Sequence record: ON568341.1
Strand: one strand, 5' to 3'
DNA length: 64,000 nucleotides
In this document: positions 15,441 to 15,608 of the stretch, in pieces
Numbering within the stretch: position 1 is the first letter of the stretch
Layout: every line of letters starts with the position of its first letter
Notes under the pieces: generated by a model
What the model saw: only the letters and a program-made list of their open reading frames with translations
Databases searched by the model: none
Told to the model about the DNA's origin: nothing
Position numbers and translations under genes: made by a program

Positions 15441-15608
15441 ATGAAAGATATTTTTACAATAGATGCAAATGTTATATATGATTTTTATCTTACTGGGGGT
15501 GTGAAGGTAACGGGTACTGTGATTGATGTTTGTGATAATGGTATAATCTTAAGTGATGGAACTAGGGTTGTTCAAACACATATCATTATGTTTGTTCCAC
15601 ATGTATGA
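15441..15608 (+). CDS. small Hfq/Sm-like protein (not in ORF track)
   Basis: 55 aa [55 protein letters not shown]; aligns by eye with the Hfq Sm1/Sm2 pattern; weak RBS. Confidence 0.5.

Follow-up and report, generated by a model that had tools for sequence, protein, structure and literature searches.

A 55-residue protein encoded behind nrdB in Rak2-like jumbo phages: a likely remote homologue of Hfq, helix-less and acidic

Hfq is the central RNA chaperone in the hosts of the Rak2-like jumbo phages. Here, we describe a 55-codon gene, UES1_020, located just downstream of nrdB in Escherichia phage UE-S1 (GenBank ON568341.1), a jumbo myovirus of 358 kb that belongs to the genus Asteriusvirus and is kin to 121Q and PBECO4; the stretch analysed, referred to as the window, comprises bases 1-64000 (64,000 nt) of its genome. 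The nearest structural and sequence relative of the protein family defined by this gene is bacterial Hfq. No description of a phage-encoded Hfq was found in the literature searched. The structure of a pentameric Sm protein that lacks the helix and putatively derives from a cyanophage has been determined, no function being assigned to it (PMC3710371), and LSm domains of the Edc3/Scd6 type engage in protein–protein contacts without ring formation (PMC3710371). Hfq-like genes are also reported from plasmids of the archaeal genus Thermococcus (PMC3543421).

The UE-S1 protein resembles bacterial Hfq (PF17209; PDB 1hk9, 3qhs, 4pno) in being a small stand-alone protein modelled as a five-stranded bent barrel in which strand 5 is preceded by a 3-10 turn, and its Sm1 segment is placed in one and the same register by BLASTP and hhalign. 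Unlike Hfq, it is without a long disordered C-terminal domain, and its gene resides in a virulent jumbo phage beside nrdB, not beside miaA/hflX. With the Sm protein of putative cyanophage origin it shares the association with a virus, the stand-alone state and the lack of an N-terminal helix; that protein, however, carries a C-terminal helix on its distal face where our models have none, differs in host and in virus lineage, and does not feature among the best 50 structural matches. A helix-less, divergent barrel in which the canonical RNA pocket is lost is likewise found in the Edc3/Scd6-type LSm domains (PDB 5lop_C, 6y3z_C), but these are the N-terminal domains of large eukaryotic decapping activators, and the best structural matches of our models are Hfq, not LSm domains. 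The hfq genes of mobile elements are, like UES1_020, genes of the Sm/Hfq family that reside on mobile elements; unlike UES1_020, the plasmid copies are canonical, with the signature intact and 34-100% identity with E. coli Hfq by tblastn.

The gene itself is delimited as follows.

15441-15608, + strand: 55-aa gene UES1_020, for a predicted helix-less, acidic protein with an Hfq-like Sm fold (open reading frame (ORF) list, conservation, ratio of non-synonymous to synonymous substitution rates (dN/dS), model, Foldseek, hhalign).

Its ATG is at 15441 and its stop codon ends at 15608. A preliminary description of this DNA had given the same coordinates and length, and the peptide quoted there corresponds to residues 13-53 of the translation; it had also called the ORF unannotated, which is not so, as the public record lists UES1_020 as a "hypothetical protein". 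The 121Q orthologue, gp34, is identical in protein sequence and named "membrane protein" in RefSeq. The same label is attached to the orthologues in CBB and GAP32 and to PHROG 17251, the family to which UES1_020 belongs (E 1e-31), while the gene was left out of the annotations of RaK2, K64-1 (AB897757), phAPEC6 and slurp01.

The preliminary description had proposed that its reading would fall if the ORF were not conserved in relatives. Using tblastn, we identified homologues in 71 phage records, with identities from 100% down to ~30%. The hosts are Escherichia, Klebsiella, Salmonella, Erwinia, Yersinia, Serratia, Pectobacterium and Cronobacter, one phage being deposited as a Xanthomonas phage, and the lineage is that of the Rak2-like jumbo phages: Asteriusvirus, Alcyoneusvirus, Eneladusvirus, Mimasvirus and allies. 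The family is small in large protein databases and restricted to this lineage, with 41 clusters at 90% identity in a word-seeded search and ~20 genuine clusters at 50% identity when 1.84 billion representatives were scanned exhaustively with HMMER. The HMMER list also contained long repeat proteins of Ig-like or beta-sandwich type (Big_6, InlB B-repeat, PPC), which match by many weak stretches and were dropped as compositional.

The homologue is flanked by nrdB and an ORF for a 77-aa protein in all 14 phage loci and all four metagenomic contigs compared, a gene order from which not even the most divergent metagenomic members depart; beyond the 77-aa ORF there usually follow a virion protein and a MazG-like pyrophosphohydrolase and, farther on, dihydrofolate reductase, RNase H and a helicase. 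The reading frame is open in each of the 14 loci, which represent at least seven genera. The UE-S1 and 121Q ORFs differ by nine nucleotides, all nine synonymous, and dN/dS is 0 in the closest and 0.10-0.38 in deeper pairs. As judged from these comparisons, UES1_020 is under purifying selection and is firmly placed as a real gene that belongs to the core set of the Rak2-like jumbo phages and is specific to their lineage; purifying selection and a conserved Shine–Dalgarno sequence indirectly indicate that it is translated.

The fold of the protein was predicted with AlphaFold2 from a family alignment of 42 sequences (model 1). This model has a mean predicted local distance difference test score (pLDDT) of 92.5 and consists of a five-stranded bent barrel that lacks an N-terminal helix. 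Its parts are encoded as follows.

15474-15599, + strand: Sm barrel, codons 12-53 (strands 12-17, 22-31, 34-37, 42-44 and 48-53; 3-10 turn 45-47; DSSP on the model).
15447-15464, + strand: N-terminal extended motif, codons 3-8, in place of the N-terminal helix of Hfq (coil; pLDDT of the block, 78).

A second model, of a GAP32-type member 35% identical to the UE-S1 protein and based on a 50-sequence alignment (model 2), served as a robustness test and has the same topology (pLDDT 85.2). In both models, residues 1-11 are coil, in agreement with the absence of the long N-terminal helix noted in the preliminary description.

Searched against the PDB with Foldseek, the best 50 matches of model 1 are all bacterial Hfq (from Neisseria, Herbaspirillum, Pseudomonas, E. 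coli, Salmonella, Aquifex, Chromobacterium and Listeria), with query-normalised template modelling (TM) scores of 0.71-0.80, root-mean-square deviations (rmsd) mostly of 0.9-2.0 Å over 45-48 columns, identities of 22-33% and E-values from ~3e-3 to 8e-3; the closest superpositions are at ~0.9 Å rmsd over 47 columns. The best 50 matches of model 2 are also Hfq without exception (best E 7.9e-4), and over the best 50 PDB matches of both models, all of them chains of the Sm family, the TM scores range from 0.6 to 0.8; among them are superpositions with TM scores of 0.72-0.80, rmsd of ~0.9-1.3 Å over 47-48 columns and 25-33% identity. The Sm-like barrel that the preliminary description had proposed to check by such a search was thus recovered with either model. 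In BFVD, a database of predicted viral structures, a clear match was found only to the CBB orthologue, the rest being unnamed small phage proteins. A glycine halfway along the bent strand 2 is strictly conserved in the Sm fold (PMC3710371), and position 25, which corresponds to Gly34 of Hfq, is Gly in 41 of the 42 family members. We conclude that the UES1_020 product very probably has the Sm fold.

Beyond the barrel, the longer members (e.g., the GAP32, BF and XbC2 orthologues) have a short acidic C-terminal tip, and one metagenomic member (P0058; L024:1231-1545) has a C-terminal tail of ~40 residues of low complexity, rich in Ser, Thr, Asn and Asp. Such a tail is modelled as disordered in the GAP32-type model, and these tails superficially recall the disordered C-terminal domain of Hfq with its acidic tip.

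At the sequence level, a single BLASTP comparison of the UE-S1 protein with E. coli Hfq, the host Hfq sequence being taken from NC_000913.3, gives 14 identities in 39 residues (36%; E 0.007), and the GAP32 member has 11 identities in 25 residues. The register is that of the by-eye alignment in the preliminary description, most of whose shared motifs hold: Y16-L17 pair with Y25-L26 of Hfq, G20 and K22 with G29 and K31, and G25 with G34; the VP pair, however, is one residue out of register. D32 pairs with Hfq D40 in addition. The Sm2 histidine that was reported as kept does pair in UE-S1 (H47 with H57), but this holds for the UE-S1/RaK2 branch only, as the position is His in 5 and Lys in 32 of the 42 members. 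As for the YK of the YKHAI motif, described there as lacking, the Tyr55 and Lys56 positions are Thr/Gln and mostly Asp, respectively.

A profile–profile comparison with Hfq had been fixed beforehand as the test of relatedness. For this purpose, we aligned Hfq from E. coli, Pluralibacter, Klebsiella and Dryocola with seven sequences from a plasmid collection (of Alpha- and Betaproteobacteria, Clostridia, Thermotogota and Bacillus mycoides) and with a further one found in a contig labelled as phage. The hhalign comparison of the phage family with this alignment gave P 5e-5 (3e-5 against the Sm core alone) at a probability of 67-76%, and an independent phage alignment of 13 sequences gave P 2.3e-5. 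The score of 30.3-30.8 compares with 8.5 for the reversed profile and with a mean of 11.0 (standard deviation 2.7, maximum 19.3) for 100 column-shuffled Hfq profiles. Furthermore, sub-threshold matches to Hfq and to Edc3 LSm recur in HMM searches of the PDB and Pfam; sub-cut-off matches to DUF6897 (three of the 42 members, best E 0.0016) are not interpretable. Remote homology of the family to Hfq is, in our judgement, probable.

Residues were counted in the BLASTP register over the 42-sequence family alignment, and over 50 sequences for strand 5 and the N-terminus. Among the positions kept with respect to Hfq, that of Leu26 is Leu in 41 of 42 and that of Asp40 is Asp in 35 of 42, besides the Gly34 position dealt with above, and a hydrophobic residue is kept at the Ile59 position. 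By contrast, Tyr55, Lys56, Ala58, Ser60 and Thr61 vary little or not at all in the Hfq alignment, while the phage family has Thr/Gln, Asp, Ile (42 of 42), Tyr/Phe and Phe/Trp at the respective positions: the Sm2 signature is lost. In Hfq, the proximal uridine pocket is formed by Gln8, Gln41, Phe42, Lys56 and His57, as seen in structures with U-rich RNA, and the PDB entries among the Foldseek matches include the Hfq mutants Q8A, H57A/T and Y55W. The phage family has no equivalent of Gln8, there being no N-terminal helix; residues of similar character are kept at the Gln41 position (Asn in 30, Asp in 12) and the His57 position (Lys or His in 37 of 42).

The UES1_020 product is a likely remote homologue of Hfq, now acidic, from which the helix, the Sm2 signature and the basic surfaces for RNA binding have disappeared. 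The family is a new, divergent one in the Sm/Hfq superfamily and not Hfq proper; we do not file it as Hfq because it lacks several features that define the Hfq family proper.

A number of results weigh against this reading. The two structural models share most of their alignment rows and are not independent of each other, and the tiny size of the domain keeps the E-values of Foldseek modest (~1e-3). The hhalign match spans 29-31 columns and covers the Sm1 segment only. Searches of Pfam, NCBIfam and the PDB (phmmer) with the single UES1_020 protein gave nothing usable; the Pfam model of Hfq (PF17209) is touched by only two of the 42 members, below the cut-off (E >= 0.0089); a profile search of the PDB brings up Hfq only at E 0.58-1.2, beside Edc3 LSm, IF1 and an SH3-like biotin-ligase domain; and Hfq is absent from the 30 matches of the family profile in the 1.84 billion representatives (HMMER). 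In addition, neither the UE-S1 paper nor the CBB paper (PMC5259590) mentions UES1_020 or an orthologue.

Further points of this kind concern RNA binding and ring formation. The proximal pocket is not kept, the Phe42 position being Gly in all 42 members and the Lys56 position Asp in 32. The members are acidic in 14 of 14 cases tested (isoelectric point (pI) 4.1-4.8, net charge -3 to -7), as compared to a pI of 9.7 for residues 1-65 of E. coli Hfq. Tyr25 and Lys31 of the distal face have equivalents in UE-S1 (Tyr16 and Lys22), but across the family these positions are Tyr in 10 and Lys in 13 of 42. At position 44, the end of strand 4, Pro occurs in 42 of 50 members and may weaken the canonical pairing of edge strands. 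We have taken the roles of Hfq Asp9, Arg16, Tyr25 and Lys31 from PMC12262471. The basic rim of Hfq (Arg16, Arg17, Arg19) is required for annealing (PMC3753642, PMC12262471); in the phage family, the rim-arginine positions are Phe or Ile (42 of 42), mostly Asp (34 of 42), and Glu, Asn, Asp or Ser with Arg in 4 of 42. Two attempts to reach the phage family from the host protein gave nothing: tblastn with host Hfq does not reach the phage ORF, and no family was matched when the PHROGs were queried with it.

Canonical Sm proteins bind uridine by means of a stacking residue two positions before the loop-3 Asn and a basic residue in loop 5. In the phage family, no polar element is better conserved than the loop that joins strands 2 and 3 (position 32, Asp in 35 of 42; position 33, Asn in 30 and Asp in 12; position 34, Gly in 42 of 42), position 31 is Arg, Tyr or Phe in 35 of 42, and position 47, in the loop before strand 5, has the Lys or His mentioned above (37 of 42). 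By analogy, position 31, Asn33 and Lys/His47 might make up a degenerate nucleotide pocket of the Sm type, which we put forward as a lead only. Positions 48-51 in strand 5 are apolar in 50 of 50 members, on both faces of the strand. As the edge strand is hydrophobic on both faces, a barrel of 55 residues must bury this surface, be it by homo-oligomerisation or by contact with a partner. Apolar residues also occupy positions 4, 5 and 7 of the N-terminus in 50 of 50 members, and position 3 is Asp or Glu in 43 of 50.

Sm rings assemble through the apolar edge strands beta4 and beta5, and the N-terminal helix is dispensable (PMC3710371, Mura and colleagues). The UES1_020 product would form a small ring through these strands, like other stand-alone Sm proteins, and the ring would bind short single-stranded RNA by its two best-conserved loops, that with Asp-Asn-Gly after strand 2 and that with Lys/His just ahead of strand 5. 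Its role would be that of a phage-specific Sm-type platform for RNA binding rather than that of a classical matchmaker of small RNA (sRNA) and mRNA. The phage RNA chaperone of the preliminary description is supported as regards the Sm/Hfq-like fold; its classical version is weakened by the acidity, by the absence of a helix with a Gln8 equivalent and by the lost equivalents of the rim arginines, Phe42 and Lys56. We infer this mechanism tentatively and rank it before a protein-binding module, with mimicry of Hfq third. The overall explanation, in which fold, homology and mechanism are blended, we give an even chance.

The UES1_020 product could instead be a protein-binding Sm module of the Edc3 kind, an acidic adaptor or chaperone that does not bind RNA itself and would serve most plausibly the 77-aa protein encoded next to it. 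The two genes are adjacent and co-occur in 71 of 71 records and in the metagenomic contigs, the Sm protein is acidic while the tail of its neighbour is rich in Lys and Arg, and the conserved apolar surface requires covering. The protein is helix-less like the Edc3-type LSm domains, to which there are sub-threshold matches (E 0.24-0.77); the Edc3 Sm module does not oligomerise, and Sm surfaces are generic platforms for protein–protein contacts (PMC3710371). By itself, the co-occurrence says little, however, as the whole block consists of core genes of the lineage, and the doses of the two proteins are probably uncoupled, given an invariant promoter between the genes and a terminator before the Sm gene. 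Moreover, the neighbour evolves far more slowly (71% mean column identity against 38-48%). On balance, we consider this alternative unlikely, although it is the one that comes closest to the RNA-binding ring.

The preliminary description had also raised the possibility of a subunit that poisons host Hfq, that is, a mimic that inserts into or caps the Hfq hexamers of the host or competes for the partners of Hfq. The nearest structural relatives are specifically Hfq and not other Sm proteins, 36% of the residues in a local match of 39 are shared with host Hfq, and the loss of RNA-contact residues together with the retention of the core and the apolar edge strand is the pattern to be expected of a subunit that assembles and does not work. 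Nearly all hosts are Enterobacterales, and the Hfq proteins of E. coli, Pluralibacter, Klebsiella and Dryocola show no differences within the Sm core; genuine hfq occurs in only 7 of 50,697 phage records, mostly host-contaminated contigs. Yet the identity in the Foldseek superpositions is 33% to Aquifex Hfq and 26% to E. coli Hfq, and because host Hfq is no closer than distant Hfqs, there is no sign of recent capture or of tracking of the host protein. The residues of strands 4 and 5 are unlike those of Hfq, including the Pro at position 44 in 42 of 50 members, and the family has diverged to ~30% identity in spite of the invariance of its supposed target. We, therefore, hold such mimicry to be improbable. 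If true, it would turn off sRNA-dependent stress regulation of the host in all Rak2-like jumbo phages of Enterobacterales and would be the first phage-encoded inhibitor from the Sm family of a host RNA chaperone.

A small membrane protein, as the product is labelled in RefSeq (121Q gp34, CBB, GAP32) and in PHROG 17251, might be suspected from the label in several records and from the grand average of hydropathy (0.66 in UE-S1). In the 14 members examined, the maximal 19-residue Kyte–Doolittle window is 0.37-1.52, below the transmembrane level, and no transmembrane segment is found; the hydrophobicity alternates in the fashion of beta-strands, Asp and Glu are spread along the chain, and the model is a confident, soluble all-beta barrel. 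The authors of the CBB paper took such labels from automated TMHMM runs (PMC5259590), which is probably how a hydrophobic beta protein came by the name, and this highly improbable reading is essentially excluded. Least probable of all, a chance ORF or a conserved RNA element in the place of a protein, for which the shortness of the ORF, the AT-rich DNA, the weak Shine–Dalgarno sequence in UE-S1 and the omission from several relatives' annotations could be cited, is essentially excluded, as far as sequence evidence reaches, by the frame open in 14 of 14 loci from at least seven genera, the nine of nine synonymous substitutions with respect to 121Q, the very confident fold obtained from the family alignment and the absence of any Rfam family at UES1_020.

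The UES1_020 family, read as remote kin of Hfq, adds a viral branch to the Sm superfamily that was hidden behind the labels "hypothetical" and "membrane protein", the latter of which should become "Sm-like (Hfq-like) fold protein" in RefSeq and PHROG. It amounts to a natural experiment on what remains of Hfq after the loss of the helix and the basic RNA faces, and it opens the question of whether jumbo phages have Sm-type RNA handling of their own or target that of the host.

The transcription context of UES1_020 includes the following features upstream of its start codon.

14265-15389, + strand: nrdB (UES1_019), small subunit of ribonucleotide reductase (ORF list, record annotation, same place in all relatives).
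15401-15428, + strand: hairpin resembling an intrinsic terminator, with T-run, 10-bp stem and 3-nt loop (-11.9 kcal/mol, z -2.9; record annotation).
15430-15433, + strand: Shine–Dalgarno-like purine run, 7 nt 5' of the start codon (annotated ribosome-binding site).

The stop codon of nrdB at 15389 and the hairpin with T-run at ~15401-15428 put UES1_020 directly 3' of the nrdB terminator, where the preliminary description had located it. A hairpin with a U-run is found at the equivalent site in RaK2, BF, CBB, Munch, Hallingskeid and EJP2 (-11.3 to -13.4 kcal/mol) and thus in all seven genera tested, with stems that differ in sequence and are alike in strength. These hairpins were folded sequence by sequence. 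The post-nrdB terminator is annotated in the records of UE-S1 and Munch, and a strict consensus terminator scan of UE-S1 did not call the hairpin at 15401-15428. Terminator-like hairpins stand behind both nrdA (13434-13457) and nrdB (15401-15428), although these genes share one orientation and lie close together; the arrangement suggests that transcription along the block is let through in a graded manner instead of being stopped fully.

A Shine–Dalgarno sequence (GGA, GGAG or GGG) precedes the start codon by 7-10 nt in the 14 aligned relatives, among which no conserved promoter for UES1_020 itself was found. A perfect -10-like hexamer occurs 2 nt before the ATG in UE-S1 and 121Q; as it is not conserved in other genera, we rejected it as a promoter of the gene and read it as part of the ribosome-binding region. 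A site within the ORF that came up in the consensus promoter scan was likewise discarded, such sites being no more frequent than expected by chance. Downstream lie the promoter of the next unit and the 77-aa gene.

15615-15644, + strand: predicted promoter of the next unit, with a -35-like hexamer (15615-15620), TG (15636-15637) and a -10 hexamer (15639-15644) (consensus scan 10/12, with TG).
15673-15906, + strand: 77-aa gene UES1_021, PHROG 16437, for a possible partner protein with an acidic N-terminal half and a Lys/Arg-rich tail (ORF list, orthologues).

The extended -10 columns (TG-n-TATAAT) 5' of the 77-aa gene are invariant in 14 of 14 relatives and are preceded by an element of the type TGAAAC/TTGGAA. 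The authors of the CBB paper tie a "divergent RpoD-like" class of promoters to genes for DNA synthesis (PMC5259590), to which the TGAAAC-type element corresponds. Because a terminator-like hairpin lies in front of UES1_020 and the promoter of the next unit behind it, with no conserved promoter of its own, the gene would probably be expressed by read-through from the nrdA-nrdB unit, in an early-to-middle programme of nucleotide metabolism together with replication genes.

The gene at 15673 with its Lys/Arg tail was described correctly from the outset, as seen in the ORF list and the alignment. The record starts UES1_021 at 15601, overlapping the end of UES1_020. In all 12 aligned orthologues, the start is equivalent to 15673 and preceded by GGAG and the invariant extended -10, which makes the annotated start at 15601 probably wrong. 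The 77-aa gene and UES1_020 occur in the same 71 records with the same breakdown by genus. Mean column identity is 71% for the 77-aa protein, the C-terminal tripeptide of which is invariant, and 48% (13 sequences) or 38% (42 sequences) for the Sm-like protein. No relatives of the 77-aa protein were found in Pfam, NCBIfam or the PDB.

Two adjacent tRNA genes at 62482-62649 are the sole Rfam matches at the gathering threshold in the whole window, with no known family of structured non-coding RNA near UES1_020. Between nrdA and nrdB of UE-S1, an ORF for a 257-aa protein with an internally repeated motif (13472-14245; PHROG 3532) is present. At this spot, CBB and XbC2 have an ORF of equal length and GAP32 an "endonuclease", while there is nothing in 121Q, RaK2, BF and Munch; megablast matches to the 121Q group start only downstream of the 13472-14245 ORF, which has the appearance of an insert in the ribonucleotide reductase operon that is variable and possibly mobile. 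Moreover, nrdB itself is annotated or called in more than one piece in Yersinia phage fHe-Yen9-04 and in the metagenomic contig L024, where a short piece lies beside an extra ORF, and in two pieces in phage CMSTMSU, the record of which carries the mark UNVERIFIED; the split genes could be due to inserted elements or to errors in sequencing.

Finally, MT835489.1, a contig deposited as "Bacteriophage sp." and obtained from human faecal samples, is one of very few records labelled as phage in which a canonical gene for Hfq occurs (301-555; 47% identity with the E. coli protein). The gene product has a match in PHROG 13793 ("unknown function", E 7e-7), and a genuine Hfq-type PHROG thus appears to exist without a functional label.

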